Notes: generated from the letters alone by a model not told the origin. Positions 13,657 through 44,620 are shown, counted from the whole stretch's first letter. The stretch is DNA of 63,502 nucleotides, filler included, from Neoconidiobolus thromboides FSU 785 (GCA_025603075.1; 5 parts of 5 records of this genome joined end to end with filler, not necessarily neighbours in it); one strand, 5' to 3'. Made by a program: numbers and translations.

Positions 13657-14009
13657 AAGTACTCTTAGATACTTTGTGTTCTAAAGAAATTCCCTGAGAA
13701 GTAGGTTTTATTGCACAAGTTTGAGCGGATATTGGCTGAATTGGGTACTACTAGTTAGAAATGTAAAACATATTTTACTATCTTTCATGAAGCAAAACAT
13801 ATGTTAGTTATACATTATGATGATGAATATATAGAATGAAAAAAAGTTAGTCAGAAACTACAATTAAAACTGAAGATGGTAGTGATATAAAAATGATAGA
13901 GCATAAAAGAAAAGCATTTATTTTAATTAAAGTTGTTTTATGGCATTTTAAATAGCCTGATTTCCTTAATTTTAATAAGTCGATCAAAGTAATGCTGCCA
14001 AAGAGACTT
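13657..14009. repeat. Left terminal inverted repeat of contig B (353 bp)
   Basis: Reverse complement of 44268-44620. Near-identical over the outer ~280 bp, with mismatches clustered in the inner ~90 bp. Confidence 0.97.
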
Positions 14010-14878
14010 CTAACTTGTATATTTTAACTTAGATGGCCCTTTTTGAATAGTATTTCATTGTCAAAAAGTAATCATAGCTAAAGTTAATTCATTCGTAGTA
14101 AATTATTGCAGATTGATAATATATTCGAAACAAAGAGTATTAATAAAGTTATGTTAGCTTTATAGGAATTAATATAAAGTGTAACTACATTAGATAATCA
14201 TATTTGATAGTGGGTTATTTAAATACATTAACCTTTGATAAAAGAATTAATATTAAGACAAGTTACAAATCCCTATTATACTACCAATATCTAAACAACA
14301 TTTTATAATAAAATTTGGTAAGTTTTAGTTGACCTATTTATATTCTCTTTTGTAGTAAATAATATAGTATCAAATCCTACAGTAAAATTTTAGATACCCT
14401 TGACCTACTGGAAACAATTATTAATAGGCTTTATCACTCCCTGATAGTTAAGGTTAAATTAGCTTGGATCAACCTAAAAAAATTCGATAAAACACTTTAT
14501 TATATGCACTTTTTTGTAAGAATATGTTTTAAATGAGCTATGAGATAGCCTCCTTTACTTATAAAATTGACAAGACACGTTTCAGTATAACATATTATAT
14601 CAAAGAACTAGAAAAGAAAATTTACTAACTACATCATAATGCACTTACACAAAACGATAGGTTGTAGTTTAGGTCATAGTCACAAGGTATTAATATTTTT
14701 TAATATTTAACTTTTTGAATTTTATTTTATCTCAATATGATCTTAACTATTATGATTTTTAAAAATAAGTTAGTGCAATATTAACAAAAGATAGACATAA
14801 CTTGAAATATATCAAAATCTAAAAACAAAGATTCGAAATTTTAAAACAAAAGTAGACCAAATTTAAATGTGTCGTTTG

Positions 14879-15895
14879 TTAATCAAATATCTCTTCTCTA
14901 TTTAAACATTTTGGTAAATAACTAAGCGTATGTTCAAAAAAGCGACTGCAGTCAGTGCCAGTTATTTTTGAAAAAATAGTGTCAATAAGTTCAAATAATT
15001 CTTTGTCACTTTGTGGATCTTTTTCTCGAATTAACTCTATCCATTTAGTATATATACCCTCAATGGGATTTAAAAATGAAGAGTTGGGCGGTAAACGTAT
15101 TAATGTATGCCCTTTAGATTCAATAAGAGCTTTGGTGCTTGGATATTTATCAGTACATTCGCTATTCATAATTATTATAGCCTCTGATATTTTTGTTTTT
15201 GTTAATTTGGTAACAACCGACTCGACAAAATTTTTATATGATTCCGCAGTGTATCGTCTTAATTGAGTATGAAATCCTAGAATTCCATGCTTATTCATAG
15301 CACAGCACATTGATACAACTTTTTTAAAGGGCCTAATTTTTAATTTTTCCTTTTCTCCTTTTTCAGCTACACTTTTATTTACACGCGTTGTTACATTAAA
15401 CGCATCTTCATTAACAAATACAACTTTAGTGTCAATAAATTTTAATACATTATTTATAAAAATATTGGCATAAGAAGCTCGAATTCCCAAAGTACTCATG
15501 TCATTATTTTGAAGGGGTGGATCAATTCGTATAAAGGAGTAATTGAAGTTCTTTAGATTTTTTTTAACCTTCTCCCAACTTACTTTCAGCCCCATTTCAT
15601 CTTGAAATCTCTTAACAATACCTTTTATTGACAAATTACAATCTTCGTCGATCCAAGATTGTATCAATTTTCTTTGAGGTTCTGGCATAGTTTTCTTAGT
15701 ATATCCACGTTCTCCAATTTTTGGCTTTCTTCTATAATCCTCGCCATCTATGTATTTCTTTACAATAGACTGAACCGTTCTTTCGTTAAAACACAAGACT
15801 TTAGCAATACTTGTTGCATTAGATCCATTTATATACGCTTCAACGATCCTTTCTCTATCCTCATTACTAAGTTTCTTGTAATTTGCTTTGGGCAT
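14879..15895 (-). CDS. IS630-Tc1-mariner transposase-derived protein, copy L4 (338 aa, intact ORF, D1->N and D2->N)
   Basis: N-terminal HTH (DRERIVEAYING...IAKVLCFNERTVQSIVKKY), VVFVNEDAF, IIIMNSE, LPPNSSFLNPIE. Confidence 0.9.
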   Translation of the reverse strand: MPKANYKKLSNEDRERIVEAYINGSNATSIAKVLCFNERTVQSIVKKYIDGEDYRRKPKIGERGYTKKTMPEPQRKLIQSWIDEDCNLSIKGIVKRFQDEMGLKVSWEKVKKNLKNFNYSFIRIDPPLQNNDMSTLGIRASYANIFINNVLKFIDTKVVFVNEDAFNVTTRVNKSVAEKGEKEKLKIRPFKKVVSMCCAMNKHGILGFHTQLRRYTAESYKNFVESVVTKLTKTKISEAIIIMNSECTDKYPSTKALIESKGHTLIRLPPNSSFLNPIEGIYTKWIELIREKDPQSDKELFELIDTIFSKITGTDCSRFFEHTLSYLPKCLNREEIFD

Positions 15896-18037
15896 TAAGC
15901 TTTTGTAAACTTAAAAATAGTGAACAAAAATGAATTTATTTACGCTAGTTCAGCTTGAAATTGTCAAATTATAAAAACTGTTCCGAATAAAATTACATGA
16001 ATCCGTCAATTATTAGTAAATTAAATTTTTGTTTAATGACGTATGATAGTTTTTTTGATTTGCACTACTTAAATTGTCAGATTTTATCAGAATAGTCGGC
16101 AGTTAGATTTTTTCGTTGTTTTTAAATTATAACTAAATTCTGCTTAGTATGAATTAAAGGACAAAAAAAGGTGTATCCCTAGGTTAAATTAAAATTTTTG
16201 CTTACAAATCAACAATGAAGATATCTAATTGTAAGCCGTTCTAGCCAGGCAAAATACAAAACAAATCAGTAATTTTGGATTGGATATGAGCTACTTTCAT
16301 AATTGATGTGAAAAGCAGTTTTCGAAATAATTGAATGACTGACCTTTAGATATTAAAAAATATTGTAGCAGTTTTACTTGAAACATTAACATGAGCACGA
16401 ATTTCCAATGATTTTAGCTTTTATATACCCAGCCTAAACTTAGAACGATGTTATCGATGGATAAAGTAGTCAATTGATGTAAGGATCTTTATCCAAAGGA
16501 ATATTGAAACTGTCTTAGTATTTCCAGATTTTCTTCTAAGTTAAACATATCATTTCAAACAAATATTCAATTGATATTAAAGTTCCTTAGATGTGAAATA
16601 GAACGATGAAGGTGTTACGATATTCAGTGTAAAAAGGAGAAAAGTATAGATACAAGGTAGCAGGAAAGTGCACAAGTTGAGTTCAAGGTAGTAGGAAAGG
16701 GCAAAGCTTATTTAGTTTGGTATTCAAGAGAGTTGATAAGTTGGAATCTAACCAAATCAATATTAATAAAAGAGATGAAATAATCAAAATACTTATAATA
16801 AAACTATTTCAGGGACGGGTTTTATCAGGTGCTTTATGTGCTCGAAAAACACGTCAAAGAGTAAGCTTTTATTTTATTATTTCAAAAGATTCAAAATTCA
16901 ATCAGATTTTGTTTGTTATGAACGGAGTGAGTATAGTTTATGTGTGAACTGTGAAGTAATATATATTAGGGAATAGCTATGCTAAAGAATAAATAGAGCA
17001 AAAAGAAACTTGTCAGAAACTATACTTAAAGCTAGAGATGCTAGCGATTTGAAAGTGATAAAGCATAAAAGTAGAGCACTTTTATTTTGGCTGATGTATA
17101 TTTTTAACATTTTAGACGGCCAAAGCTTTCTAACGTAGAAAAATGAAAGTAAAGTTACTAAAAAAGTTTCTATCACTCGTATATTTTAATATGAAAGAGC
17201 CTTTATTGAATAGTATTTCATCCTCAAAAAACATAGATTGAGTTTATTTATTTGTAGTAAGTTATTATAAAGCCATAATGTATTTAAAGTAAAGAATTCG
17301 ACCAAAGTTTTATTAGCTTCAAAAAGTAATTACAAAGTATAATTTCGTCAAATAATCATCAAGTAATTGATCAAAGTTAAATTATAATCACTATCCTTTG
17401 ATAAACGAATTAAAATTTATGATTTATAGATTTCAAATTAGTTGTTTTATAATTGCTCTATTTACATATACTATTAACTCCAAGGTTTAGTAAGTTTTGC
17501 TTAATATGATTGTTTCCTTGTTATTTAAAAATACAGTATCAAACCTTATAATGTGATTCAAAACATCGTTGGTTTGTTGAAAATAATTATCAGCAAGCTC
17601 CATCACCTCTTGATGATCATTTTTGCGTAGTTTGAGTCAATTTAAAACGAGTTTGATGTAAAGTATTATATTATAGCATGTTCTCTATATATAAAGATAT
17701 AAATTTTACATCGAGTTCTCAGATAGACATTGCCATTTTTAGAGAATAGGGTCAAATCCTTCAATATAACTGTTCTATGTCAAACGCTTAAAAAGATAGT
17801 TTTTGACAATACTATGATATCCCTGTGCAAAACTAAGCTAAAACGAAGACACAGTCTTACAACCATGCGCTATAATATTTTCACATTGTTTGTGAAATTG
17901 ATTCCACGTTATTACAATTTTTAGTTACTATTATATATAGAAAATACTGTTGTATCAAGACAAAAAAAACTTCACTCAACATTTCAAAAGTAAAAATTTA
18001 AAACTTAAAAAGAATAAATTAAACTTAAACATATCAT

Positions 18038-19102
18038 TTAATAATCAAGTATCGCTTCTTTTCTCATACATCTTGGTAGAAAACGTAACATAGTATCATA
18101 AAAATAATTACAATCATTGCTACTTATTTCTGATAGAGCACTGTCGATAGCTTCAAACAATTCTTTCTCATTTTGTGGATCTTTTTCTCTTATCAACTGT
18201 ATCCATTTAGAGTACATAAACTCAATAGGATTTAGAAACAAAGAGGCAGGCGGTAAGCAGATTAACCTGTGTCCATTTGATCCAATGAGTCCTCTGATGT
18301 TTGGATCCCTATCAACGTATTCAGTATCCATGATTATCATAGCTCCTGATACGTTCATTTGGGCAAATTTAATAATAATTGATTCAACAAACTGATAGAA
18401 GGATTCAGTGTCAAAAGGATTTGCTTGAGTCTGATATTTAACTATACCATTTTTGCTCATTGCACAGCAGATCGATGTATCTTTTGTTTGAAACCCGCGA
18501 CCAAGGGGACCAGATTTCTTTTCTTTAATTGCTTTGACTTTAAATTTTTTGCGCATTGTAACTGAAAAAGTTGTTTCATTTATGAAAAATAGTTTAGAAT
18601 CATCAATCCTTGGTATTTGATTGAGGAAAAAATTGGCATAATAAGCTCGTGTTTCCAAAGTTGATAAACTGTTGTCCTGAGGAACAAAATTGGTATTTTG
18701 AGGAGCAGAATCTTTATTCTGTGAGACTGAATACACGCGCTTAAAAGAGAAGTGAAACTCCTTTAGATAGCTTAAAATAGTAGTCAAACTTGCATTTATC
18801 CCCATTTCACTCATGATTTTTTCCTTTAATGTTTTTAATATGATAGTACAGTCTTCATCAACCCAAGAGCGAACCGTATTTAATTGGTCATCTGATATAC
18901 GTCTTTTAGAACCTCCTTTCGGCTTCCTACTATAATCTTTCCCCTGGGTATACATTCTTATAAGACCATGAACAGAAGTACGGCAGAACCCCATCACTTT
19001 GACAATTTGTGCTGCACTATTCCCATTAATATAGGATCTAACGATCCTTTCTCTATCTTCATTAGTGATAGACTTGTATTTCTTTTGGTTTGTAGATGAC
19101 AT
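18038..19102 (-). CDS. IS630-Tc1-mariner transposase-derived protein, copy L3 (354 aa, intact, D1->N)
   Basis: HTH plus LFFINETTF, MIIMDTE, LPPASLFLNPIE. Confidence 0.9.
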   Translation of the reverse strand: MSSTNQKKYKSITNEDRERIVRSYINGNSAAQIVKVMGFCRTSVHGLIRMYTQGKDYSRKPKGGSKRRISDDQLNTVRSWVDEDCTIILKTLKEKIMSEMGINASLTTILSYLKEFHFSFKRVYSVSQNKDSAPQNTNFVPQDNSLSTLETRAYYANFFLNQIPRIDDSKLFFINETTFSVTMRKKFKVKAIKEKKSGPLGRGFQTKDTSICCAMSKNGIVKYQTQANPFDTESFYQFVESIIIKFAQMNVSGAMIIMDTEYVDRDPNIRGLIGSNGHRLICLPPASLFLNPIEFMYSKWIQLIREKDPQNEKELFEAIDSALSEISSNDCNYFYDTMLRFLPRCMRKEAILDY

Positions 19103-19735
19103 TCAAAACTTAAAAAAAGAATAGGTTGACTTTCTTATTTTTACGAATTTAGCTGTTTTTTTGTTAGACAGTTTTTTTTAGCAAATTCTAAATTTTTGCT
19201 AAATTTAAAACAAGTGAACACACGTTATAATGGAAAGAGTTGTTACCATTATTAATTTAATATTTAGTATTGTATTGTAATATTTTGTAAATATAGTTGA
19301 TTGATCTAATAAGAAATTACTAGAAAGTATCAGTTTACAAAGAAAGGAATATGATGTAAGAATACATTAAAATTTATTAACTGAAAAATAAAAGTAAAGC
19401 TGAAACTTATTTAAATTTATAATTTATAAATTAAGTTTTACAAAATGAACAATCTTGAAATGGAAAAAACCATTTTTATCAGAACAGCTTACAGCCAAAT
19501 GTCTTCCATTGTTTTTAATTTGGAGCTAAGTTTTTAACATAAATCTAAGGGTAAAAAGAGCTGTGATCTTTAAACTTATTAGAAAAACCTACTATAGATC
19601 AAAAAAACGGAAGGATCTAACTTCATGCTGTTCTATTTGGTTCTTATTTTACTATCTAATTTTCTAAAATATTATGTTCTATACTTACTATAGTTGTTGA
19701 ATAACGTAGTGTTTTAATTACTGAAGGCCAAATAT

Positions 19736-19834
19736 GAGGATGTTTTTTTTGATTTTATTACTTTTGCCATTTTTTAAGCTCAATTTGAGTGGAGAACTTG
19801 TTAGTGAAATTTTTAAACATAAAAATACCTCGTC
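19736..19834 (+). mobile_element. MITE copy 4
   Basis: ATAT|GAGGATGTTTTT...AAAAATACCTCGTC|ATAT. Confidence 0.85.
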
Positions 19835-19902
19835 ATATAAGTAAGGGCATATAAATTAAAAAAATCAAAGTAGTGAAAATAAGAACATAAAATTACTTTA
19901 AT

Positions 19903-20915
19903 TTAATAATCCAATATTGCTTTTTTTGTGCATTTTTATAGAAAACTGAGCATATTCTCATAGAAGTTGCTACAGTCAGATCCTGATATTTCTGATAAAA
20001 TACTATCAACAAACCAAACAGATTTTCCTCATTTTATCAATCTTTTTCTCTTACAAATTGTATCTGTTTATAATATTAAACTCAACAGGGTTCAGAAACA
20101 AAGAGGCAGGCGGTAAGCAGATTAACCTGCATCCATTTGTTTCAATAGTTCCTCTGATATTTAGGTCTCTATCAGCACAAAAATTATCCATAACTACCAT
20201 AGCTTCTGAGATGTTTGGTTAAGAAAATTTGTGGATGATTAATTCAACAAACTGATAAAAGGACTCAATATCAAATGGATTTACTTGAGTTCTATGGTTA
20301 ATTATACCATTTTTAGTCATCGCATAACATATCGACACGCTTTTCCTTTGAAGTCCAGGATCAAGGCGAGTGGACTTTTTTTAATTTCCTCTTAAACTTT
20401 GAACCCATCATAACGAAAAAGATTGTTTCACTCACAAAAAAATATCGGTGCCACCAAACCTTGTTATTTGGCCAAGAAAGATATTAGTATAGTGAGATCT
20501 TATTTCCAAAGTAACAAAATTATTATTTTGAGTAGCTGTATCAGTACATTTGAAAGAGAAATTAAATTCTTTCATATGCTTCGATATAGTTGATTTACCA
20601 GCACTTATTCCCATTTTATTCATAAGTTTCTCTTTTACTGTTTTTAATGCAATTTTACAATTTTCATCAACCCAAGATTGAATAATTTTTTCATGAAACT
20701 GTGATGTGACTACTCCTAGAGCTTGTTGCTCATAATTGTTTAAGAAAATTTTTCTTTCCAGTATACTTTTTTATAATATCGTTGACAGTTAAAGATCTAA
20801 AGCTCATTACTCTAGCAATGTTGATTTGGCTGTTCCCATTTACATGAGATTTATAAGTCCTTTTTCCATTAACATTGTTGTTACAGCTATATTTCTTTCG
20901 AATCGTAGATGATAT
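19903..20915 (-). pseudogene. Transposase-derived pseudogene, copy L2
   Basis: Start codon mutated (ATA), with stops and frameshifts. Retains ISAGKSTISKHMKEFNFSFK, FVSETIF and LICLPPASLFLNPVE, and ends ...AILDY*. Confidence 0.88.
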
Positions 20916-21258
20916 TTAAAGATAACATAAAAGAACAAAATTATTTTCTTTAGTTTAATCAGTTTAGGTAATTTTTGTCTAATATTCATTTTACAGTTCA
21001 AAATTTTTGTTGAATTTAAACTTGATAAAAAATAACAATTAAGTTTATAATAAAAAAGAATTGTTTTCACTATTAATTTGTTACTTAGTTTTGTACCATA
21101 ATACTTTGTAGTTATGAAGCTATTTACCTTGTCTTTAACTTATCCTTTGGTAAGTTAAATACCTTATGGTAAGAATATGACATAGAAGCACATAAAAATG
21201 CATCAATTAGAAAAAAATTGTAATTAGTATAATACTTGAAAGTATAACCTAATATTTA

Positions 21259-22416
21259 TTAATCAAATATTTCTTCTCTCCTATTACACTTTGGTAAGTA
21301 ATTAAGCATATATTCAAAACAACTATTACAATCAGATTCTGAGATCTCTGAAAAAACTGCACCCATAACTTGAAACAATTCATTTTCATTTTGTGGATCT
21401 TTTTCTCTGACCAACTCTTTCCATTTAGTATACATACCTTCAATAGGATTTAAAAACGGTGAATTAGGTGGTAAGCACATTAATCTATATCCTTTTGATT
21501 TAATAAATTTTCTAATATCTGGACCTTGATTAATATGTTTATTATCCATTATTACAATTGCCTCAGTTATATTTTTTTGTGCTAACTTAACAATGGTTGA
21601 TTCAATATATTGATGAAATGATTCCATTTTAAAAGGCAGTGCCTGAGTTTGATATTCAATTATACCAATTCTACCCATAGCACAACGTATGGATATGTTT
21701 TTTTTACGGATCCCGAAGTACTGAGATGTAGTTTCTTTTTTAGCCAATAACTTTTTATTTGTGTACATTGGAATAGTAAACGTTACTTCATTAATAAAAA
21801 TAGCTTTGGATCCAATAGAGTTTAGTATATGACTTATAAAGTTATTAGCATAAAAGGCCCGGCTTTCCAGAGTAGCCACATCATTATTTGTAGGGTCAAA
21901 CTTGATACGTTTAAAAGAAAAAGTAAATTTTTTCATATAACAAGATAATCGTATCAGAGGTATATTTAATTCCATTTCATTCATTAATTTTTCTCTTAAT
22001 TCTTTTAATGAAATTGTACAATCCTCATCAAACCAAGATTGCATTGCTTTTTGTTGGAGATCGGACAAATATATTTTTGGCTCTGGTATTACTTTTGGTT
22101 TTTTTAATCCTAATATTGTTTTTGATTTTTTTACTTCCTGTGTTGCTTTTATTCTTTTTAATGGTTTTGTCGCTTTTGGCTTGAAGATTACTTTTAGTTT
22201 TTTTGGTTCCCTTGGTTCCCGTACTACTTTTGCATTTCTTGTATAATCTTTCCCTTCATGGTACTTTTTGATAATGCCATGAACAGTATTATAACCAAAA
22301 CCTAATGCTTTAACAATGTCTTTCTCACTGAAGCCTTTGATGTATGAGTTGACTATTTCATGTCGTTCTTCAGTACTAGCTTGTTTAAACTTTATCTTTG
22401 GAAGTTGAGCTGACAT
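21259..22416 (-). CDS. IS630-Tc1-mariner transposase-derived protein, copy L1 (385 aa, intact, Lys/Pro-rich insertion after the HTH, D1->N)
   Basis: AIFINEVTF, VIVMDNK, LPPNSPFLNPIE. Confidence 0.9.
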   Translation of the reverse strand: MSAQLPKIKFKQASTEERHEIVNSYIKGFSEKDIVKALGFGYNTVHGIIKKYHEGKDYTRNAKVVREPREPKKLKVIFKPKATKPLKRIKATQEVKKSKTILGLKKPKVIPEPKIYLSDLQQKAMQSWFDEDCTISLKELREKLMNEMELNIPLIRLSCYMKKFTFSFKRIKFDPTNNDVATLESRAFYANNFISHILNSIGSKAIFINEVTFTIPMYTNKKLLAKKETTSQYFGIRKKNISIRCAMGRIGIIEYQTQALPFKMESFHQYIESTIVKLAQKNITEAIVIMDNKHINQGPDIRKFIKSKGYRLMCLPPNSPFLNPIEGMYTKWKELVREKDPQNENELFQVMGAVFSEISESDCNSCFEYMLNYLPKCNRREEIFD

Positions 22417-23253: not shown

Positions 23254-23350
23254 GAAGATGTTTTTCTGATTTCATTATTTTTTCCATTTTTTAAGCGCTA
23301 TTTGAGTGAAAAGATTATTAGTAAAATCTTAAACACAAAAATACATCTCC
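23254..23350 (+). mobile_element. MITE copy 5
   Basis: GAAGATGTTTTT...TTAAGCGCTATTTGAGTG...AAAAATACATCTCC. Confidence 0.82.
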
Positions 23351-23867: not shown

Positions 23868-24100
23868 ATGGCTAAATTCCTTAGTCGAGCTGGTAGCAAT
23901 ATTGACCATTTACAAACACGATTATTGAATAATAATCATGATGATTATCGACCATTAAGGCCAAGTCCGTTTAATCCAGAACGGCAGTTATCGCATTCCA
24001 AAGTGAAAACAATTAAACAAGAGGATAATAAGTTGGGTAAGTAATAAATTTGTTCTTTAATTTTTATTTATTTTATTTCATTTATCAAAACTTTCAATTG

Positions 24101-24137
<37 letters not shown>

Positions 24138-27100
24138 CTTTTAGTGATTCTTATTTTTTATTTTAGGTACCTTTGAAGGGGTTTATTTACAAGTAGTTTT
24201 AAATATATGGGGCGTAATTTTATTTTTACGTTTAGGTTATATCCTTTCCCAAGTAGGTTATTTAATTACATTAGCTTTTTTTGCTGCTGGTTATTTAATT
24301 ACTACTTTTACTTCTTTATCCATTTCCGCTATTTCTACCAATGGTACTGTCAGAGGTAAATATTTTATATTTTTTATATTTTTTATATTTTTTATATTTT
24401 TTATATTTTTTATATTTTTTATATTTTTTATATTTTTTATATTTTTTAATCTCTTTTTATTGATACGGTTTTTGAATTTTATTAGGTGGTGGTCCTTATT
24501 ATATGATCTCTAGATCTCTAGGGCCCGAGTTTGGTGGTAAGTATCGAATTTATTGTTTACTATAAGCTTATTAATTCAAATGGATTACCTTATCAGGTAG
24601 TATAGGTATAATAGTCTATTTAGGTATCTGTTTAAATGCAGTATTAAATGCGTTAGCATCTGTGGAAGGCATAGTAGAATTTTTTGGTAAAGAACACGGT
24701 ACTTTAATTAAATGGTTACCAGAAGGACAGGTAATTAGAATTTTATTATATCATTATTAATTAAAAAATAATAATCATTTTTTATTATTCAGTGGTGGTT
24801 ATTATTATATGGTAGTATAGTTTTACTAATCTCAATAAGTATTTGTTTTATGGGTTCTAAAATAGTAGCTAAAGCTAGTTTAATATTCTCCATAATCCTT
24901 TTAATCTCCACATTATCGATCTTTTTTTCTTTTTTAATTCAACCCCCTTTCATCGATTCTGAGAAATCTGTCATATATACTTCCTTTAGTTGGGATACCT
25001 TAAGATCCAATCTTTATCCCAAATTATATCCTAACGAAAATGGTACAATGGAAACTTACCAATCTATTTTTAGTGTATTATTTCCAGCTTGTATAGGTAT
25101 TATGGCTGGTGCTTCTATGTCTGGTGATTTAAAAGATCCATCAAGATCTATACCAAAGGGTACCCTTTGGGCTATATTAACTACTTTTATTGCTTATATA
25201 TTATTATTGACGATGTTTGCAGCAACGGTTTCTAGAGATACTTTAATTGCAGATATTAATGTTATGTCTCATGTAAGTCTTTATTGTTCTTCTTTTTATT
25301 ATAGTTATTGATACTTTCTATTTTATTCTAGATTGGTTTATATCCACCCTTAGTCAATGTAGGTGTATTAGCTACCTCTATCTCATCATCATTTAGCTGT
25401 TTAGTAGGAGCATCTAAAATTTTACAAGCATTAGCTAGAGATCATTTAATCCCTGGTTTCTATCCCTTTGGTTATGGAAGTCCAGTCGGGGATGAACCAA
25501 TTATAGGTTTTTTATTAACATATGCATTAGCACAATTATTTTTATTTGCAGGTGAAATGAATTTGGTAGCTGGTATTGTTACTATGTTTTTTGTACTTAC
25601 TTTTGGTGTGACGAATTTAGCATGCTTCTTATTGAAAGTGGGTGGTGCGCCTAATTTTCGACCTTCTTTTAAATATTTTAAGGGTTGGACTGCTTTTGTT
25701 GGGTTTTTACTTTGCTTTTCCACTATGTTTTATGTGTCACCAATGCAAGCTACACTATCTACTACTTTTGCAAGTTTTATATTTGCATTAGTTCATTTTA
25801 CTACTCCACCAAAAGCTTGGGGGGATGTAACTCAATCTTTAATTTATCATCAAGTAAGAAAATATTTATTAAGATTAGATACACGTAAAGAACATGTCAA
25901 ATTTTGGCGACCACAAATTTTATTATTAATCAATGATCCAAGACAACAATATCAATTAATGTTATTTTGTAATTATTTAAAAAAAGGTAGTTTATTTATA
26001 ATTGGTCACATATTAAAAGGAGAATTAAGAGAACAATTAATGGAAATGAAAAAACAAAAATTGAGTTTTATGAAATTAATAGATATTATGAAAATGAAAG
26101 CTTTTATTCAATTAGATGTTGCAAAAAATGAAATGTTAGCTGCAAGATCCATTTTATTAGGGGCTGGTTTAGGGGGCATGGTACCCAATATTGTTGTTTT
26201 AGGTCAATTTAATTTAAATCATTATAGAAGGAGATCGAATAGTGGAATTGGAATGGAAACTGAAGATGAAGATAATGAAGAAATTGATACTTTTGAACAA
26301 ATATTTAAGCAACAATATGAACAATTTAAAATTGGAGATCGATTGGGACCCTTACCAACGGATGAAATGAAATCTGAATTACCCATTTCTATTATGGATT
26401 ATGTTAGTATAATTGAAGATTCTTTATTATTAAATAAAGCCGTGGCTATTGCTTTTGGATTTCAAGAAAATCCATTGTTACCTTGTCTACCAAAAGAATT
26501 ACAAAATTATCAAAGTAATTTTAAAAAATATATTGATCTTTGGCCTATTCAAATGGTCAATTGTAATGAACATAATACAAATCAAGCTATTAATTTTGAT
26601 TCATATACAATGGTATTACAATTAGGATGTATTTTACATATGGTACCTCAATGGAAAGAAAGATATGAGTTAAGAGTGAATTGTTTTGTGGAACATAAAG
26701 TGGATGTCGAAGAAGAGAAATCAAGAGTTAATAAATTATTATTGAATTTAAGAATACCTGCTCAATTAAATGTATTTTATTTGGATGAGCAAGCTGTACC
26801 TGAATATGATAAATTATTTGGTGAAAATCAACAAAATTACAGGACTAATGAACCAATTGAATTTGATAAGAATAAAAATGAAGAAAGTCAAAATAAACAA
26901 CAAGCTTTTTCTACTTCATTAAGAATTAATTTACCTTTACCAGATGGTTATGATCAAACATTTGATACTAATAATCATACTGAAGATGAGTGTTCAGATA
27001 AAGATAGCGAAAATGCATCGGATGAAATGTCCGATTTTTTAATAGATTTAGATCTTGTAGAAGAACCTATAATGTATCATCAACCTCATGAGACAGCTAA

Positions 27101-27335
27101 AGAATTTAATGAATTACCAGTTCATTTACAATATTCAATATTAAATCAATTAATTTTATTAAATTCTAATCAGACTGCCATTGTGTTTTCAACATTACCT
27201 GCACCTGATTTAAATTGTTCAAAAAAAGAAAATCATTGTTTAAATTATTGTCAATCATTAGAACAATTTACAAAGAATTTACCACCAACTATCTTAGTAC
27301 ATGCTAAATCTTTGACCGTAACTACTTCTCTTTAA
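23868..27335 (+). CDS. SLC12 cation-chloride cotransporter (Vhc1-like), multi-exon
   Basis: [114 protein letters not shown]. Confidence 0.95.
24367..24447 (+). repeat. Intronic 9-bp tandem repeat (ATATTTTTT)n
   Basis: About 9 tandem units read directly in an SLC12 intron; an (AAT)n tract lies at ~24103-24135. Confidence 0.9.
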
Positions 27336-27518
27336 AACATGTATGTGAATGTTCTACTTTTTTTTATAGTGTTTTTTTTAATATCAAAAATAAAATTATA
27401 AAAAAAATTAATTATTTTAATATTATTTTTATTGTTTTTATTAATTTAAGCTATAAAAAAATAATTTATTCAAAAAGAAAATATTTCAATTTCAGTTTCA
27501 ATTTTATATTTTAATCAA

Positions 27519-29835: not shown

Positions 29836-29872
<37 letters not shown>

Positions 29873-33551: not shown

Positions 33552-34802
33552 ATGGATCAAATTGAAACTCAGTTAAATAAATTGGAAGAAGCCAAGTAAG
33601 TAAAATCAAAAGAATAGTAGAATTTATACTAAAAGATATTTATTTATAGAAAGAGTGTACAAGTGGAAAAAGCCATTCCCTTAAATTATGATTTAGGGTT
33701 ATTATGTGCTACAGATATTAATACCATGGATAACACTAAGTTCAAGTAAGACAAGACACTAAAATTGAAACTCTTCACTTCTAACACCTTTTTTTTCCAA
33801 AACAGAAAACTAGATGATAACCTTGATGATTATTTAAAAAGATATTGCCGTGATGGTATTCAATTATTATTAAATCAAGTATTTTCTCTCCCTGTAGTAG
33901 CTAGTGAAGATGGTTATATGGTTACATTACCAAAACCAAATACTTCATTACCACGTGAAAAGCCAGTAAGTTCTCTTATTTTCCTTCTTATTCTTCTTGT
34001 TTTTTAACTTAAATTTCTAGATTCCAAAACCTAAACCATTAACACGATGGGAGAAGTTTGCTAAGGCTAAAAACATCACGAATAAAAAACGAGAACGTAT
34101 GGTTTATGATGAAGAAAGTGGAGAATATAAACCACGATATGGATATAAGGGTATTAATCAAGTAGCTAAAGATTGGTTAATGGAAGTACCAGATGGTGAA
34201 GATCCAAATGTTGATTTATATGCTAAAGAAAGAGAAGATAAAAAATCAAGAGTTGAAAAGAATTTAAAGAGACAAATGAGAAATGTGAGAGAAGCTAGCG
34301 GAGAAAATAAAGAAAAGGAAACTCCTAAAGAAATAGCTGCTAAATTAAGACAAGAAAGAACAGTTAGAAAAGGCACCCTTGAAAGAGATGCTGTATTGGC
34401 TAAAGTTTCTACAGCTTCTATGGGTAAATTCGATAAAAAAATTGAGGGCGAAGCTAAAGCTAAGGGAGTTAGAAGAAAGGTAAACAGACTTGTTTTATTC
34501 CTGAAATAGTATATTTATATAAAAATTTCGTTAGTTTGAACCTACCATTGGTAAAGATTTAAAGCTTGAAAAGGATAGTAGTTTAAAAATCTTAAATAAA
34601 TTAACGAACGGTAGTGCAGCTAAAGAACAAAAGAAAAAAGAAGTGGTCAATGTTAGAAAGGTAAATATCTATTGACTATAAGATGCTTTTGTAGATTATT
34701 TTTTATTTTTTATTTTTTTAGGCTATTAAAGTTACTGGTGCTAAAGCCAAAGAGGACCCTAAATCTAAAGGAAAAAGTTCTAAAGGCAAAGGTAGAAAAT
34801 AG
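33552..34802 (+). CDS. RRS1: Ribosome biogenesis regulator Rrs1, multi-exon
   Basis: YDLGLLCA, RDGIQLLLNQVFSLP, LPREKPIPKPKPLTRWEKFAKAK, VYDEESGEYKPRYGYKG, STASMGKFD. Confidence 0.95.
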
Positions 34803-35619: not shown

Positions 35620-36732
35620 ATATGGAAAAAGATACATAAATAAATACAAAAAATTATTAATAAAGATCGAGAAAGAATTATCGATTTACATATCAATAAG
35701 TCAAATGGCATCGAAGTTTCCAAAATATTAGACTTTGCTATTAGTACTGTTCAAGGAATTATAGAAAAGTATCTTGATCGTAAAGACTATTTAAGAAAGC
35801 CGAAAGGATATTACAAAACAACTCTTAACTGATTCTCAACAAAAAGCTATTTAATCTTGGATTGATAAATATTGTATTACTAAATCGAAAGCCATACAAA
35901 AAAGATTAAGGGAAGGAATGGATATAGATGGAAGTTTATTAGAAATAGAATCTTACATTAAAATCTTTAATTTCAATTCAAAACGTATCAATGTGCCATC
36001 TTATGATAATGATTTGACTACTTTTAAAGACAAGAGCATTTTATGCTAATTACTTTGTTAACAACATGGGGATGTATTTTTGTGTTTAAGAATTTTACTA
36101 ACAAATTTTCCGCTTAAATGGCGCTTAAAAAATCGAAAAAGTAATGAAATCAAAAAAAACACACTCCCATATATTAAAATTTATCGATTCTAAGATTCTG
36201 TTTATAAATGATACTACATTTAGTATTATAATCAAACGAATAAAAGTATTATCTAGAAGTAAAAAGACAGACTCACTTACTAAAGGACTTTGTAAAAAAA
36301 TCATATCTAGGTTATGATATGGATATTAATGGAATAATTGAGTATCAAACTCAAATGCTTACTTTTGATATTGAATTGTTTTATGAATTTATTAAATCCG
36401 TTGTTATCAAATTTTAAAAAAAAAACGGAAGCAATAAATATTATAAATAACGAATATGTTTACAGAGATCCAAAAGTTAGAGAACTTGTTAACCCAATGG
36501 ACATGTTTTATTTCGTTCACTACTGAATTTTATATTTTTAAATCCTGTTGAAATTATGTATAGCAAATTAGTGCAATTGATCAGAACAAAAAATTCACAA
36601 AATGAGGATGGGTTATTTAAAATTTTTGGTAACGCTTTATCACAAATAATTGATAGTGATTATAAGGATTTTGATGAACATATGCTTGGTTGTTTAGCAA
36701 GATGTATGAAAAAAGAAGAGCTACTCGATTAA
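35620..36732 (+). pseudogene. Transposase-derived pseudogene, copy R1, interrupted by a MITE
   Basis: NKDRERIIDLHIN...STVQGIIEKYLDRKDYLRKPK, YANYFVNN[MITE]ILKFIDSKILFINDTTF, LNPVE, ...MKKEELLD*. Start approximate. Confidence 0.87.
36068..36168 (-). mobile_element. MITE copy 6, inserted into pseudogene R1
   Basis: ACAT|GGGGATGT...ACACTCCC|ATAT. Removing the element plus one 4-bp TSD restores N-N-I-L-K-F. Confidence 0.9.
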
Positions 36733-37059
36733 CAGACTCAAATTAAGTTCTACAATTGATTTTTTTTCAAATTTTTATGCATACTACATTACTCATCAAG
36801 AGATGAGTAAAATACCTCACAGAAATTTATAATATAAACAACAATAGTTAAAAGGCGTCAAATACGAAACCAAATACTAAATCGTGATCGAAACGGCCCT
36901 TCATTTCAACCTATTGCTTATTTTGTCTAATATCTTAAATTCATATTAGGAGCTAAAATAATTGGGATTTTTAATAGTCGTTTGAGATTTTTATTGGTTT
37001 AATTGAAAAAAGATAAAATAATATTGAATTTTTCAAATTTAAGATTATTAAAATTTCCA

Positions 37060-38061
37060 ATGAAATATAAAAATATCACTAACGAAGACCGAGAAAAAAT
37101 TGTTAGTTCATATATCAATGGATCCAGTGCAACGAATATTGCCAAAGTAATGGGCTATAATAGAGCTACTGTTTTTGGTATTATACAAAAGTATACAACT
37201 GGTAATGATTTTAAAAAAAAGGCAAATGTAGCTCAACGAACATTTATATCGGATGCTCAACGAAAAATTATGCAATCATGGATTAATAAAGACTGTACCA
37301 TTAAACTGAAAACAATAAAAACAAGATTGAAGGATGAAATGGGGATAGATGCAACATTGTCATGTATAGAATCCTATATGAAAGCATTTAATTTCTCTTT
37401 TAACCGTCTTAATTTACCTCCTCAAAACAATGAGCTGACTACTTTGGAAGCTCGTGCCCTTTATGCTGATAGTTTTATAAACAATGTAGCAAAGTATATA
37501 GGCTCAAAGGTTCTATTTATAAATGAAGCAACGTTTAGTATTTCAATGTCAACAAATAAAAATTTATTATCTGCAAAAAAGAGAGCTGATTTTATTGGCA
37601 AAGGATTTCGTAAAGCAATTGCATCAATGTGTTCTGCTATGAGTATAAATGGGTTAATTGAACATCAAACTCGAATGATGATTTTTGATACTGAATCATT
37701 CTATAAATTTATTGAGTCAGTTGTTGCTAAATTAGAGAAAACAAGCATGTCAGAAGCAATAATTATTATGGATAATGCATGCATTGAAAAATATCTAAAA
37801 GTCAAAGAACTTATTGAGTCAAAGGGACATAGCTTAATTTGTTTGCCGCCCGCATCTGCGTTTTTAAATCCTAATGAAGTTATGTATATTAAATGGAAAG
37901 AATTAATCAGAGCAAAGGATCCACAAGATGGAAATGAATTAATTAAGGTTATTAATAAAGTTTTATCACAAATAGCTGATAATGATTGTAAGGATTTTTA
38001 CGAACATATGCTTAGTTATTTGCCAAGGTGTATGAAAAAAGAAGAGATACTTGATCAATAA
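37060..38061 (+). CDS. IS630-Tc1-mariner transposase-derived protein, copy R2 (333 aa from ATG 37060, intact, D1->N)
   Basis: VLFINEATF, IIIMDNA, LPPASAFLNPNE; 34 residues separate D2 and E. Confidence 0.9.
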   Translation: MKYKNITNEDREKIVSSYINGSSATNIAKVMGYNRATVFGIIQKYTTGNDFKKKANVAQRTFISDAQRKIMQSWINKDCTIKLKTIKTRLKDEMGIDATLSCIESYMKAFNFSFNRLNLPPQNNELTTLEARALYADSFINNVAKYIGSKVLFINEATFSISMSTNKNLLSAKKRADFIGKGFRKAIASMCSAMSINGLIEHQTRMMIFDTESFYKFIESVVAKLEKTSMSEAIIIMDNACIEKYLKVKELIESKGHSLICLPPASAFLNPNEVMYIKWKELIRAKDPQDGNELIKVINKVLSQIADNDCKDFYEHMLSYLPRCMKKEEILDQ

Positions 38062-38380
38062 ATTCGTTAAGCTTTTACATTATTTTAGTTTTCTGGCACA
38101 AGATTTGATGTATACCTGTCTCGCTTATCCTTCTGTAAGCAAAGCGCCTCATAATAATTTGTGAGTATGATGAACACACACAATTACAAAGTATTTCAAG
38201 ATGAAATTAGAGCTCTAAATTAGTAGTGAAAGTTATTTTTGTATTTCAATATATTAATTATTTTATAATAAGCTTAAATTTAAAAGTTCGAATTGTAAAA
38301 TTATTAGCTGAATTACTCAACAAATATAGTTTAAATTTATTAGTCCAAAAATCAAATTTATCCTTTATTTATAGTTTTAA

Positions 38381-39416
38381 ATGTCATCTCTAACTCGAAA
38401 GAAATATGCTTCTATAAGTAGTGAAGGAAGAAAAAGAATTGTCAACTCGTATATCAATGATTACAGTGCAGGACGAATTGTTAAATTAATGGATCGCGAA
38501 GGAGTTACTCTTTATGATGTAGTAAAAAAGTATACTGATAGAAAAGATTATTTAAAAAACCACAGACAATAAACGATAAAATTAAAAAGATATCGAATTC
38601 TAATGAAAAGGCTATCTAATTTTGGTTTGATGAAGGCTGTAGCATATTGTTAAAAGCAATAAAGCAGAGATTCATGGATGAAATGGGGATGGACGCAAAC
38701 ATATCAACTATACCAAACTATATAGAAGAGTTTGACTATTCTTTCAAGCGTATTAATCTAGTTACTCAAATAAATAATTTAGTTACTTTGGAAACCTGAG
38801 TATATTATGCTAATTTCTATATCAATCAAGTACAAAGGTTTGATGAATCTGAGATATCCTTTATAAACAAAGTGACGTTTTTGATTACAATGTATAAAAG
38901 ACTTAAAAAAGGGAATTGAAACAAAAAACGTTCTCCTATTGGTCCTGGGTTCAGTATAAAAAACGTATCACTATGGTATGGGATAGCTAAAAATGAAATA
39001 GCCAAATATAAGGCTCAAGTAAATCCACCCAATGTTGAATCCTTTTATCACTTTATTAAATCAATTATTACTTAACTTACTCAAACAAATGTATCAAGAA
39101 TTACAACAACTATGAATAATGATTATATCGATAGAGATCCAGATACCAGATGACTCATTCAAGCAAATGGGCAGAGGTTAATCTGCTTACCACCTAGCTC
39201 TGTATTTCTAAGTCCTATTGAGTTTATGTGTTTTAGATGGATATAACTTATAAGAGAAAAAGATTCAAAGAATGACAGGGAGTTGTTTGATATGTTTTAT
39301 ATGTTTTGTGTAGTTGATAGCCTTATATCAGAAATAGCTAGTAATAGTTGTCGTTTTTTTACAATACCATGTTACGCTTTTTATCTGGATGCATAAGAAA
39401 AGGGGTGGTATTTAAT
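38381..39416 (+). pseudogene. Transposase-derived pseudogene, copy R3
   Basis: MSSLTRKKYAS...RIVNSYIN, SFINKVTF, RLICLPPSSVFLSPIE, with multiple stops and frameshifts. End approximate. Confidence 0.87.
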
Positions 39417-39746
39417 AGATTTTATGAGGATTTTACATTGCTATTTTTTCAATTTTATTTCATCTTATAAGCTTTTATCTATTCCTAAGTCGCCCACTCT
39501 TCGATAAGTTAAATACTTTATAGTAATTTGAAGATAAGATAAACAACTTTATAGCTACAAAATATTATAATAAAAAACTAAATACTAAATTTACAATGAA
39601 AGTAACTCTTTTATTATAACTTACTAATGATTTTTTACCAAGTTTAAACTTAATAAAAATTATTCAAATCTTTGATGTTAGACAACAAAAATTACCTAAA
39701 TTGATTAAAGCACAAAAAGTAGCTTATTCTTTTTTCTTAATTTTAA

Positions 39747-40796
39747 ATGTCGTCTCCAACTAGAAAGAAATACAACTGTACAGATAATGCTGATAGAGAA
39801 AGAATTGTAAAATCGTACATCAATGGGAACAATCCACCTGACATTGCTAGAGTAATGGGCTACAATAAAAGGACTGTTATGGATATTATAAAAAAGTATA
39901 CTGAAGGGAAAGATTTCTATAAACAACCACGAACAGGAAGGCCCAAAAATAAAGTTATATCAGAATCTCATTTAAAAATTATCCAATCTTGGGTTGATGA
40001 AGATTGTAAAATTGCATTAAAAACAATAAAAGAGAAACTTATGAATGAAATGGGAATAAGTGCTGGCAAATCAACTATCTCGAAGCATATGAAAGAATTT
40101 AATTTCTCTTTCAAGCGTATTAATCCAATCACTCAAAGTAATGATATAGTTCTCCAAGACAATAACTTGGTAATTTTGGAAACGCGAGCCTATTATGCCA
40201 ATTTCTTTATGAATCAAATGCAAAGGTTTGATGATTCTAAATTTTTCTTTATAAATGTAGCAACCTTTTCTGTTATGATGCGTTCAAAGTTTAAACAAGA
40301 AGAAATTAAAAACAAAAAGTTTACTTCCCTTGGTCCTGGATTCAGTCTAAAAGATATATCAATGTATTGTGCTATAAGTAGAAATGGTATAGTTAAATAT
40401 CAGAATCAAGTAAGTTTTTTTGATACTGAATCATTTTATCGTTTCATTGAATTGATCATCGCTCAACTCGCTCATAAGAATATAACGGATGCTATGATAT
40501 TCGTGGATAATGATTATGTTGATAAAGATGCAAATATTAGAGGACTTATTGGATCAAATGGACATAGATTAATTTGTTTGCCACCGAATTCCCCGTTTTT
40601 AAATCCTGTTGAGTCTATATATACTAAGTGGATGCAATTGATAAGAGCAGAGGATCCACAGAATGAGAAGAAGTTATTTGAAGTTATGGATAGTGCTTTG
40701 GTGGAAATAACCAGTAATGATTGTAATTCTTTTTACAATACTATGCTACATTTTTTACCCAGGTGTACAAGAAAAGAAATAATATCTAGTCAATAA
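39747..40796 (+). CDS. IS630-Tc1-mariner transposase-derived protein, copy R4 (349 aa, intact, D1->N)
   Basis: FFFINVATF, MIFVDND, LPPNSPFLNPVE. Confidence 0.9.
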   Translation: MSSPTRKKYNCTDNADRERIVKSYINGNNPPDIARVMGYNKRTVMDIIKKYTEGKDFYKQPRTGRPKNKVISESHLKIIQSWVDEDCKIALKTIKEKLMNEMGISAGKSTISKHMKEFNFSFKRINPITQSNDIVLQDNNLVILETRAYYANFFMNQMQRFDDSKFFFINVATFSVMMRSKFKQEEIKNKKFTSLGPGFSLKDISMYCAISRNGIVKYQNQVSFFDTESFYRFIELIIAQLAHKNITDAMIFVDNDYVDKDANIRGLIGSNGHRLICLPPNSPFLNPVESIYTKWMQLIRAEDPQNEKKLFEVMDSALVEITSNDCNSFYNTMLHFLPRCTRKEIISSQ

Positions 40797-41111
40797 CAAA
40801 TACAGTTTCATTTATAGTATTGATGTTTATTTAGTTTACAAGTCTTGGTATATATTTGAGTCATATTAATCCTTTATTGAATGAAAGTTCTTTTGTGATT
40901 TATTTAAAAAACAGTAACTGAAACTATAGAATAATGTAACATAAATTTTATACACTGAATCAATGATGGAAACTACTCTTTTCTTTTCACTATTTTCTAT
41001 TTAAACAAAATTTAAATCTAAATCAAGGCTTAAATAAAAAACTAAAATTCTTAATTATCAAAAAATAATTTGTTCTTTCAATTTTAAAAAAGGTTGTTTT
41101 TATAAGTTCAA

Positions 41112-42151
41112 ATGTCATCTCCAACTAAAAAAAACTGGCTCTTATTAGGAATAATGATAGATGAGGGATTATCAAATCCTGCATTAGAAGAGACATTGTA
41201 AAAGAGATTGCTAAAATGATGGGATATAGTGAGAAAGCTGTTCGTAGAGTTATTCAAAGATATAACGAAGGAAAAGCTTATCTTAAAAGACCAGTGCCAG
41301 GAAGGCCTAAAAATAAATTTATATCGGTTTTCCAAAAAAACAATTCAACCTTGGCCTGATGAAGACTGTACTATTTCATTAAATAGAATAAGGAAAAAAC
41401 GCATGAATGAAATGAGAATAAACCCAAGCAAGATAACTGTAAAAATGTATGTAAAAAAGTCTCACTAGTCTTCCAGGCATATTGATCCAGCCACTCAAAA
41501 TAATGAGTTAACTCCTCAAAAAATGATTTGGGTACTTTAGGAACGCAAGCTTATCATATCATTTACTTTATGAATTAAATGTGAAGATTTGATGAATCTA
41601 AGCTTTTTTTGTGAATGAAGCAACGTTTTTCCTTGGAGCATGTACAAAGTATAGACAAAAAGAAATCACTCGCAAAGAATTCCCGTCTCTTCGCACTAGA
41701 TTCGGAATGAACAACATACCACTGTGCTGCGCAATGAATAAACATGGTATAGTTAAATTTAAAACACAAATAGATTCTTTTGACATTGAATCATTTTACC
41801 AATTCATTGAAATGATAATGATTGAACAAGCTCAAAAAATATATTAGATACAACGTTTGTAATGAATAACGAATATGTTGATAGATATCCAAATGTAAGA
41901 GGACTCATAAGATCAAATAGATACATACTGATTTTTTTTACCACTCAATTTTTCGTTTCTAAACCCTATTAGTTCTATATATACTAAATGGATACAGTTA
42001 ATTTGTGCAAAAGATCCACAAAATGAAAAAACTTTTTGAAGTTATGGATGGTGCTTTTTTTAGGGACTTCAGAATCTTATTATAGCAATCTCCATGGAAA
42101 CATATTTGGCTTTCTACTAAGGTCTATAAAAAAGGAGCGATATTTGGTTAG
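41112..42151 (+). pseudogene. Transposase-derived pseudogene, copy R5
   Basis: MSSPTKKN start, DEDCTISL, FVNEATF, CCAMNKHGIVKFKTQ, AKDPQNEK, with frameshifts. End approximate. Confidence 0.86.
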
Positions 42152-42439
42152 TAGATCATCAATTTGAGCTATTTTGATTTTCTATTTTAAATATCTAACA
42201 TTTTTTGTGTGGAATTAATTTTATTTTAATTTGTATTTATCCTTTGAGTAAGCTTTCTAGTAATTTTTGTTACAGAGTAATATAATCAAGGAGCACCATA
42301 CCACGAAACCAAAATAATAAATAGTGTAGCGCTATAACAATTCATGTTTTTAAGCTATTACTCAATTCAATAACTTAATATTTACACAGGGATACCGAAA
42401 TATCGTTAGAAGCTTCTTTTTAATTGTTTAGCATAATAT

Positions 42440-42537
42440 GAGAGTGTTTTCTTGACTTCATTACTTTTTCCATTTTTTAAGCACTATTTAAGCGGAAAAT
42501 TTGTTAGTAAAATTCTTAAACACAGAAATACATCGCC
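42440..42537 (+). mobile_element. MITE copy 7
   Basis: ATAT|GAGAGTGTTTT...AAATACATCGCC|ATAT. Confidence 0.87.
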
Positions 42538-44267
42538 ATATAGTTAGTTATATGAAAGACTTACTACAGTTTCTGAAAGTAGAAATAACTCCCTGACAAT
42601 TCAAGTCAGAAAATATATTGCTATAAGTAAAAGGTATGCTATTCTAAAATATTTATACCGAGTTCTTCTTAGGTCAAGCCAGGGTATGGTGTGATAATCA
42701 TCAGAAGTCGACGGAGTTTGTGGTCCATGGTTTTCAGTAAGTTAGGGCATATTCAATATTACTGTGGGATCAAACACTACTTCCCTTGCAGAAAATACTA
42801 GGAGGGACTCGAATAATCCAGCTTGAACCATTAATTATTATAACTAATAATACATATTAAATACTGGAGCTATAAAATAACTAGCTAAGGTTACAAAATA
42901 TAATTCTTGGCAGTTTAATAAATAATACAAATAAGGATTTTTAAAAAAAGGATGTTTAATGTAACAATGTTTCCTATTTCTTATAAAGTTAACAAAGCTT
43001 TAATAAAACCTTTATCTCTGATATATTTTCGCTTCACAACAACTTACCATCAATGAATTAGTTTTACCTACGCCTATTTCCCTCACAGCGAGATGTTATT
43101 CAAAATGGCTCTTCCAAGTTAAAATGCTGTGAATCTATAAGCTTCTTAAGTACTGTTCCTTTTATTGACTATATATAATATCATGCAAAATTGACTAATT
43201 TTTGTTAATGATTTTAATAAAATAAAAAAGCAACTTCTTGTATACACTATCGCTTCCGAATTTCTAGTGTCATGTATTTGATTGATGTTTCTAGCAAGCC
43301 CACCTTAGCCCTAAACACTGTTTCATCATAACATTTTCTGAAGCATATTTTATTTCACGACTTGCACACAATATGTATTTCTCGCATTTATAACTAGTAG
43401 AATTTGATCCAATTTTAAATCTTTTAAGATAAAAATAAAAACTTATTCATCGGCATATTTTTTGTGCACATAAAATATCTAATAGCACCCATCTTTAGAG
43501 TAACTTCGTTCCAAATATCTAGATTATATATCTACTTAAATCCAACTTGTGAACTTCTAAATATCAAATCAAAAAAATGATCCTCTTTCTACTACCTTGA
43601 GTTCAACTTTTACACTTTCCTGTTATCTACGTCTATGCGTTCTCTTCTTGACATAGGACATTGTAACGCCCCTATTTTACCATTTAGCATCTAAGGAACT
43701 TTAACACTAATTAAAAATCTGTTTAATGTGCTACATATAACTTAACAAGTAATATGAGGATATCTGATCATTATCATTATCCCTTGAATAAATATACTAA
43801 TATAAATCATCTCTATATCTGTTGACAATAATGTTTTGAATTTAATTTAAGTAAATAAATTGAAATTTTAATTTGTGTCCATATTGATATTTTAAGTAAG
43901 TTGTTGCATTGTCTATTGCTACTTCAAAGACATTCAGCCAAGGACTACTGAAGCATTGCTTTCCATATTAATTAAGAAATACAACTTATATAACAAAAAT
44001 CAATGATTGTTTTGATTTCTACCTAGTTATAACAAAACTATTAAGTTATTGAACATCAAAAATAGTTACTATATGTCATCAAACAAAAAATTTCAATTTG
44101 TTAATAATTGAGACGGATTTATATAATTTTATTCAAAATAGTTTTTGTAATTCAATAATTTTAAGCTGAAACTAGTGTAAATAAATTAAGTTTTTATTCA
44201 CTGTTTTCCAATTCACGAAGTTCAAATGTCCAAACCAAAGCAAACTACAAGAAACTCAATATGTCAA

Positions 44268-44620
44268 AAGTCTCTTTGGTAGTATTACTTTGATTGACTT
44301 ATCAAAATTAAGGAAACCAGGCTATTCAAAATGCCATAAAACAACTTTAATTAAAATAAATGCTTTTCTTTTATGCTCTATCATTTTTATATCACTACCA
44401 TCTTCAGTTTTAATTGTAGTTTCTGACTAACTTTTTTTCATTCTATATACTCATCATCATAATGTATAACTAACATATGTTTTGCTTCATGAAAGATAGT
44501 AAAATATGTTTTACATTTCTAACTAGTAGTACCCAATTCAGCCAATATCCGCTCAAACTTGTGCAATAAAACCTACTTCTCAGGGAATTTCTTTAGAACA
44601 CAAAGTATCTAAGAGTACTT
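44268..44620. repeat. Right terminal inverted repeat of contig B (353 bp)
   Basis: Reverse complement of 13657-14009; both contig ends stop at the same repeat position. Confidence 0.97.

Follow-up and report, generated by a model that had tools for sequence, protein, structure and literature searches.

In the mating-type (MAT) flip-flop systems of the yeasts Ogataea polymorpha and Komagataella phaffii, a segment of tens of kilobases is bounded by inverted repeats of about 2 kb, a geometry that permits inversion, and a neighbouring centromere or telomere silences one side. Primate sex-chromosome palindromes are built from inverted arms that carry a multi-copy gene family, surround a unique spacer and show signs of exchange with one another. 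Here we describe a locus that resembles both, the complete contig C225 (30,964 bp) from the draft genome of the early-diverging fungus Neoconidiobolus thromboides FSU 785, which occupies positions 13657-44620 of the window, the 63,502-nucleotide stretch of DNA that was analysed. Its arms carry arrays of transposase-like genes. Like the domesticated Tc1/mariner-pogo transposases (SETMAR; CENP-B and fission-yeast Abp1/Cbh), this family has kept the fold and the helix-turn-helix (HTH), has lost transposon ends, is under purifying selection and has an impaired catalytic triad. With autonomous Tc1/Sleeping-Beauty (DD34E) elements it shares the Pfam DDE_3 domain, a PAI-type HTH and a 34-residue spacing from the second Asp to the Glu. 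Our analysis indicates that C225 probably consists of a mirrored block (a non-coding sequence termed X, a spacer resembling the terminal inverted repeat, and genes of two subtypes, A and B) placed around a 12-kb unique core, with later homogenisation of the tips and with domesticated genes.

Each of these likenesses is partial. Relative to the yeast systems, C225 has no HMG-box gene, no telomere repeat at its ends and no identified centromere; its arms are old, decayed gene arrays where the yeast repeats are clean, and its repeat measures 353 bp. HMG-box matches numbered 15 elsewhere in the genome and none on C225 (homeodomain genes were not searched separately). Unlike in the primate palindromes, near-identity on C225 is found only in the outermost 353 bp, far from the spacer, whereas other arm sequence is 61-76% identical. 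Homogenisation on C225 would accordingly be described as local or episodic, not arm-wide. Overall, the locus represents a real and fairly ordinary ancient rearrangement, in which an inverted segmental duplication of a gene array is combined with an apparently domesticated transposase family, both of known kinds.

The contig is bounded by two inverted copies of a single sequence, which is also present in diverged form within the left arm:

13657-14009, plus strand: left terminal inverted repeat, non-coding, 98% identity to 44620-44268
44268-44620, minus strand: right terminal inverted repeat, from alignment to the left copy
16958-17417, no strand assigned: diverged internal copy of the terminal-repeat sequence, 67-76% identity to 13796-14254 and 44481-44275

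A preliminary description of this DNA had reported an inverted repeat at both contig ends, starting at a shared base, that was near-perfect on the outside and diverged inward. Alignment bore this out in full. Both copies begin exactly at the outermost base of C225, and at 98% identity the repeat is 353 bp long (369 bp at 96%). No mismatch falls within the outer 170 bp. Seven mismatches lie further inward (one at 13827, six within 13950-13997), and homology of the two tips collapses past 14009. All seven differences are A/G transitions, a number too small for testing mutational bias. Genome-wide searches, which here and below covered the draft assembly of 24.6 Mb in 799 contigs, returned only two copies of the repeat and likewise only two of its outermost 22-mer. 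This rules out a high-copy dispersed repeat at the tips, which the preliminary description had named as the contrary case.

The internal copy lies in direct orientation relative to the left tip, at an offset of 3162 bp, and the right arm carries a weaker internal copy. Placed in the context of the arrays, the tip sequence corresponds to the 3′ flank of a 3.1-kb array unit. Because diverged internal copies exist and the tip is the flank of such a unit, the tip sequence is no special site.

Nine DDE_3/HTH copies were identified on C225, five of them intact and four pseudogenes (marked p):

14879-15895, minus strand: T1, intact, 338 aa, Pfam DDE_3 (4e-17) and HTH, without an intact right-arm partner
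18038-19102, minus strand: T2, intact, 354 aa, subtype A (Pfam, tree)
19903-21110, minus strand: T3p, pseudogene, subtype A (alignment, tree)
21259-22416, minus strand: T4, intact, 385 aa, subtype B (Pfam, tree)
35659-36737, plus strand: T5p, pseudogene, subtype B (alignment, tree)
37060-38061, plus strand: T6, intact, 333 aa from the ATG, subtype B (Pfam, tree)
38381-39416, plus strand: T7p, pseudogene, subtype A (alignment, tree)
39747-40796, plus strand: T8, intact, 349 aa, subtype A (Pfam, tree), 61% amino acid identity to T2
41112-42205, plus strand: T9p, pseudogene, subtype A (alignment, tree)

Pfam matches included DDE_3 (4e-17 to 5e-8) together with HTH_SB, HTH_23, HTH_28 and HTH_29. 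Among the copies on C225, an NCBI gene model exists only for T6, and this model is partial (227 aa). All four left copies are on the minus strand and all five right copies on the plus strand, so that every copy points outward, as previously noted. Uniform strand within an array is a product of tandem duplication, and the orientation therefore counts as two units, not nine.

Further copies of the family were found on C162, C1, C3, C79 and C61, with five additional intact genes on C162, C1 and C3. Two copies on C3 (112-1141 and 13865-14883) form a convergent pair with 74% identity, with about 12.7 kb between them in the first part of that contig. A maximum-likelihood tree took in all 18 genomic copies and placed members of both arms together. 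Clade A (support 96/99) joined T2 and T3p from the left arm with T7p, T8 and T9p from the right, and clade B (84/86) joined T4 from the left with T5p and T6 from the right. T1 clustered with copies from C3 (C3a and C3b) and C61 (99/97). Neither arm was monophyletic. Read from the outside inward, the order of subtypes is [T1] A A B on the left and A A A B B on the right.

The arms share additional sequence between the arrays and the terminal repeats:

15865-16922, no strand assigned: block X, left, non-coding, 76% then 65% identity, inverted, against 44261-43387
43387-44261, no strand assigned: block X′, right-arm copy of block X, an inverted match to it
44226-44258, plus strand: T1-like remnant, first ~10 codons with the ATG at 44226, from a three-way alignment

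Block X (about 1 kb) is confined to C225 genome-wide and sits outside both arrays, in inverted orientation. Self-alignment of the contig revealed mirror collinearity, in the form of an inverted chain that pairs 13657-22108 with 44620-38550. Within this chain, tip pairs with tip, X and T2 (16238-19412) pair with X′ and T9p (44033-40798), and T3p-T4 pair with either the T8-T7p or the T7p-T6 units. Homology between the arms thus extends 8 kb inward and is collinear.

Because block X is common only to the arms, and because the chain is inverted and collinear and the subtype order mirrored, the data support an old mirror duplication as the origin of the arms. Real support for the mirror comes from the terminal repeat and block X, both present only on C225, and from the mirrored order of subtypes. 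The preliminary description had proposed both an old inverted duplication and a mirroring of subtypes across the arms; the inverted chain and the C225-only block X uphold the former, and clades A and B of the tree uphold the latter. It had further proposed that the outer arms are still being homogenised. This part fits the tip (98-100%) and one patch at 81-89% identity, and not the remainder of the arms (61-76%).

The profile of identity along the arms is stepped. From 98-100% in the tip, DNA identity falls to 76% just inside and then to 61-65%. The T1-like remnant directly abuts the inner edge of the right repeat and is followed by X′. Relative to the left arm at 14010-15865 (spacer and T1), about 1.85 kb is missing from the right arm, and at this deletion junction identity drops from 98% to 76%. 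It is the 1.85-kb right-arm deletion, not gradual decay, that sets where the repeat ends on its inner side.

Selection cannot account for the near-identity of the tips, because synonymous divergence between the arms is saturated and the internal copies of the tip sequence are only 67-76% identical. The tip would instead be younger than the arms or homogenised, and recent conversion, or re-copying that halted at heterology, offers a reasonable explanation. A second candidate for exchange lies between T3p and T8, where a patch at 81-89% identity (about 20530-20730) stands against a background of about 68%. This patch suggests an older inter-arm exchange.

We then considered the genes themselves. 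The ten intact copies (five on C225 and five on C162, C1 and C3) have open reading frames (ORFs) of 333-385 codons in a genome of 26% GC. They are 43-61% identical to T2, and the best paralogue pair reaches 61-62% protein identity. The ratio of nonsynonymous to synonymous divergence (dN/dS) was 0.20-0.48 in all 45 pairs, with dS values of 0.67-1.63. A profile built from the ten copies matched two parts of Sleeping Beauty, its PAI subdomain and its catalytic domain. Within the latter, nine of the ten carry Asn in place of the first catalytic Asp, the copy on C1 retaining Asp. The second catalytic Asp is present in eight, and no copy has lost the Glu, which follows at a spacing of 34. The motif around the first position reads FINEATF in nine of the ten N. 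thromboides copies; in their nearest relatives, of which 91 of 103 have Asp, it reads fiDEvGF.

All ten copies group in one clade (SH-aLRT 100), and the nine with Asn are united in a sub-clade within it (97). As this sub-clade excludes the Asp-bearing C1 copy, the first Asp was lost once, and the family diversified afterwards with its reading frames maintained. The proteins are predicted to retain the DNA-binding HTH as well as the catalytic-domain fold while having lost the first catalytic Asp. A search for terminal inverted repeats around the units on C225, C1, C3 and C162 yielded no convincing pair, and near-identical dispersed copies of the family were absent at the dS values given above. 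A word-based protein search with T2 returned almost nothing, but a full HMM search gave many relatives (225 at E<1e-30), and the idea of an orphan family was dropped. Of the ten best relatives looked up, nine are on short metagenome contigs and four are named 'transposase'.

Because transposon ends are absent, dN/dS is below 1 over deep divergence and the first catalytic Asp has been lost, these genes most likely constitute a domesticated family derived from Tc1/Sleeping-Beauty. Compared with autonomous Tc1/Sleeping-Beauty elements, the family lacks terminal repeats, has Asn for the first Asp in nine of ten copies and has no near-identical copies. Of the four features that define autonomous Tc1/mariner elements, it thereby fails three (triad, terminal repeats and recent copies). 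It also differs from SETMAR, CENP-B and Abp1/Cbh in being multi-copy, tandem and fast-diverging, in being found in one fungus and in consisting of pseudogenes for almost half of its members. As a by-product of this work, the family is more useful than the contig structure. About 18 genes of Tc1/Sleeping-Beauty descent make up its one clade, nearly all of them uncalled in the public annotation, and the family represents a candidate transposase domestication in Zoopagomycota that is directly testable.

Together, these findings fit the following course of events. A block containing X, a spacer resembling the terminal repeat and genes of subtypes A and B would have been duplicated long ago, either as an inverted duplication or as a direct duplication followed by inversion of one copy with the core, two origins that are indistinguishable here. 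The arms would then have diverged through tandem gain of 1.35-kb units, four pseudogenisations and insertions of MITE-like elements (MITE, miniature inverted-repeat transposable element), and a 1.85-kb deletion would have stripped a T1-like copy from the right arm. Much more recently, the outermost 353 bp, and possibly more sequence past the contig, would have been made near-identical, the likely cause being gene conversion between the arms or recent re-copying that was halted at the deletion. An assembler unable to pass the identical 170 bp would stop at the same base on each side. If this structural reading is right, C225 provides a clear small case in an early-diverging fungus that combines a tandem family, an inverted segmental duplication and local conversion.

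Several points weigh against this scheme. No contig in the assembly overlaps or extends the terminal repeat. The assembly retains telomere ends of about 90 bp as well as a 193-bp dovetail (between C228 and C233, at 99.5% identity), yet nothing adjoins the repeat of C225. Gene conversion is deduced from a pattern of identities toward which assembly is itself biased, as contigs end only where paralogues turn identical. Across the arms, dS is near saturation (0.82 for T4-T6 and 1.25 for T2-T8), which makes the ages rough and the dN/dS values approximate. Finally, the proposed loss of catalysis is deduced from a single residue. Beyond the repeat, possible topologies include dropped short neighbours, a longer collapsed outer arm, a flip-flop or joined ends, and identical sequence may continue past both contig ends, as the preliminary description had supposed.

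Between the arms lies a unique core (about 23.4-35.6 kb; 12 kb) with the following genes, for which spliced genes were searched exon by exon:

23868-27335, plus strand: SLC12 cation-chloride cotransporter, several exons (Pfam AA_permease and SLC12 on separate exons)
27519-31432, minus strand: Asn-rich gene, possibly KNL1/Spc105-like (ORFs of 824 aa and 217 aa)
33765-34509, plus strand: RRS1 ribosome biogenesis gene, two exons (Pfam; single copy in the genome)

The core has no repeat partner, in agreement with the preliminary description, and its naming of the core genes was accurate in part. SLC12 and RRS1 were recovered, SPC105 has a language-model lead only, and a MIC12-like label was unconfirmed. 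Specifically, the 217-aa ORF of the Asn-rich gene resembles Knl1 RWD_C clusters by language-model features (score 0.91), a result to be taken as a lead only. A Pfam search with this gene gave no match, and Pfam Spc7 had no match in the entire genome. The 824-aa ORF (28958-31432, minus strand) has long Asn runs and FG-like repeats and is probably the N-terminal part of a KNL1-like gene.

NCBI K502DRAFT_326021 (N. thromboides FSU 785) matches the largest SLC12 exon at 100% identity, and the exon's next relatives after N. thromboides are from Entomophthora, Massospora and Basidiobolus. On the basis of this identity, the intron-split genes and the single-copy RRS1, C225 is an ordinary nuclear chromosome segment of N. 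thromboides. It is AT-rich, with a GC content of 26% (18-31%). A centromere-like layout, with inverted repeats around a core, was considered and rejected, since the core carries expressed-type genes. A 9-bp tandem repeat, (TTATATTTT)n, is located at 24365-24446, either upstream of SLC12 or within its intron.

Four other explanations of the whole locus, and one extension of the domestication proposal, were weighed against the mirrored block. The first, raised as a possibility in the preliminary description, is that C225 is an invertible flip-flop unit, with both orientations of the 30-kb segment present in the culture and an assembler that broke at the outer edge of the repeat. We consider this unlikely. 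It would explain why both contig ends fall on one base position of an inverted repeat that has two copies and 170 identical bases at the tip, and why no neighbouring contig is linked or overlapping, and the identity pattern itself suggests inter-arm exchange. However, the same end anatomy occurs elsewhere in the assembly with no flip needed. Read as its reverse complement, the end of C61 starts at the very base at which C3 starts, and successive 100-bp windows from there are 100, 99, 100 and 90% identical before identity falls to about 70%. This stretch has a transposase start codon 125 bp from the end and is present in only two copies genome-wide. Because C3 and C61 are two different contigs with the same anatomy, the shared-base ends of C225 reflect assembly that ended in near-identical tracts of this family and are no particular evidence of a flip. 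A general habit of the assembler to produce self-complementary ends on every contig was also considered; same-base self-complementary ends were found in none of eight size-matched contigs. These results carry a warning for other draft genomes, in which 'terminal inverted repeats' of contigs can come from where assemblers stop.

Two further points argue against a flip-flop. The ordinary genes of the core, with the missing HMG-box gene and telomere repeat, leave no obvious switchable output, and the known repeat, at 353 bp, is short of the approximately 2 kb of the yeast systems. Homologous recombination between the repeats could cause rare inversion, as it could for any such pair, and nothing indicates a programmed flip. 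A flip-flop would matter only if both orientations were real.

In a proposal that builds on the gene family, the Asn proteins would still bind or pair DNA sites and would promote inversion or conversion at the mirror arrays, at the C61/C3 ends and at the convergent pair on C3, such that the 30-kb segment exists in both orientations. We regard this as quite improbable.

Assembly artefact, either through a repeat copy wrongly attached to one end or through a chimera of two loci, is very unlikely. The assembly is a draft, contig ends generally lie within repeats, and the identical outer 170 bp could represent one graph node used twice. Nevertheless, the two repeat copies differ at seven positions and have different inner junctions, and they are thus two distinct sequences. 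The collinear homology between the arms continues 8 kb inward, far beyond the repeat, and the size-matched contigs did not share the same-base ends.

It is highly improbable that no block was duplicated and that active Tc1-like transposons inserted independently in opposite orientations, with the terminal repeat being transposon sequence. Such an origin would be compatible with the transposase ancestry of the genes, with the further copies on five other contigs and with the abundance of a MITE-like element, a sign of past activity of some DNA transposon. In contrast, no unit has terminal inverted repeats, there are no young copies (43-61% protein identity, dS 0.7-1.6) and the first catalytic Asp is lost in nine of ten. 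The terminal repeat and X are both unique to C225, and a mirrored X-A-A-B order is unexpected from random insertion.

Physical adjacency of the two ends at a palindromic junction, perhaps across a dropped short spacer, with the 31-kb unit being circular or tandem, is barely credible. In its favour, the repeat is found only at the two ends of C225, graph assemblers break at palindrome centres and the C61 end and C3 start could likewise join head to head. Against it, the nuclear genes on the contig include single-copy ones with introns (RRS1 is an example), no rDNA, replication genes or plasmid genes were found on it, fold-back at its start is limited to a 6-base palindrome, and to our knowledge a circular or tandem replicon of this kind is without precedent in fungi. 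As a separate observation, the C3 start and the C61 end may themselves be joined head to head.

Outside the mirrored features, a short dispersed element accounts for four additional positions on C225:

19731-19839, 23259-23351, 36059-36172 and 42436-42546, no strand assigned: a MITE-like element of ~110 bp with short inverted ends, in four copies

Genome-wide, first-look candidates for this element number more than 2800, at 90-95% identity. It was considered as a part of the palindrome and dropped, because its four copies on C225 do not mirror one another in orientation and the element is dispersed genome-wide. Folding of the element gave nothing. Its abundance implies recent activity of a putative DNA transposon system in a genome that has been reported as repeat-poor, with only 13.5% repetitive sequence in a published comparison (PMC11105155).

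A tRNA scan and an Rfam scan of C225 for structural RNA were both empty. TTAGGG telomere repeats of about 85-95 bp were found at the ends of about ten contigs, which include C17, C40, C44, C51, C100, C124, C128 and C213, and an internal block is present on C66. No telomere repeat was found at the ends of C225. A mini-chromosome with two telomeres was rejected on this basis, given the TTAGGG repeats on about ten other contigs. One other contig, C233 (29.5 kb), carries a 760-bp inverted repeat (84%) near both of its ends, with a 241-bp offset, and this repeat is related to the end of C228.

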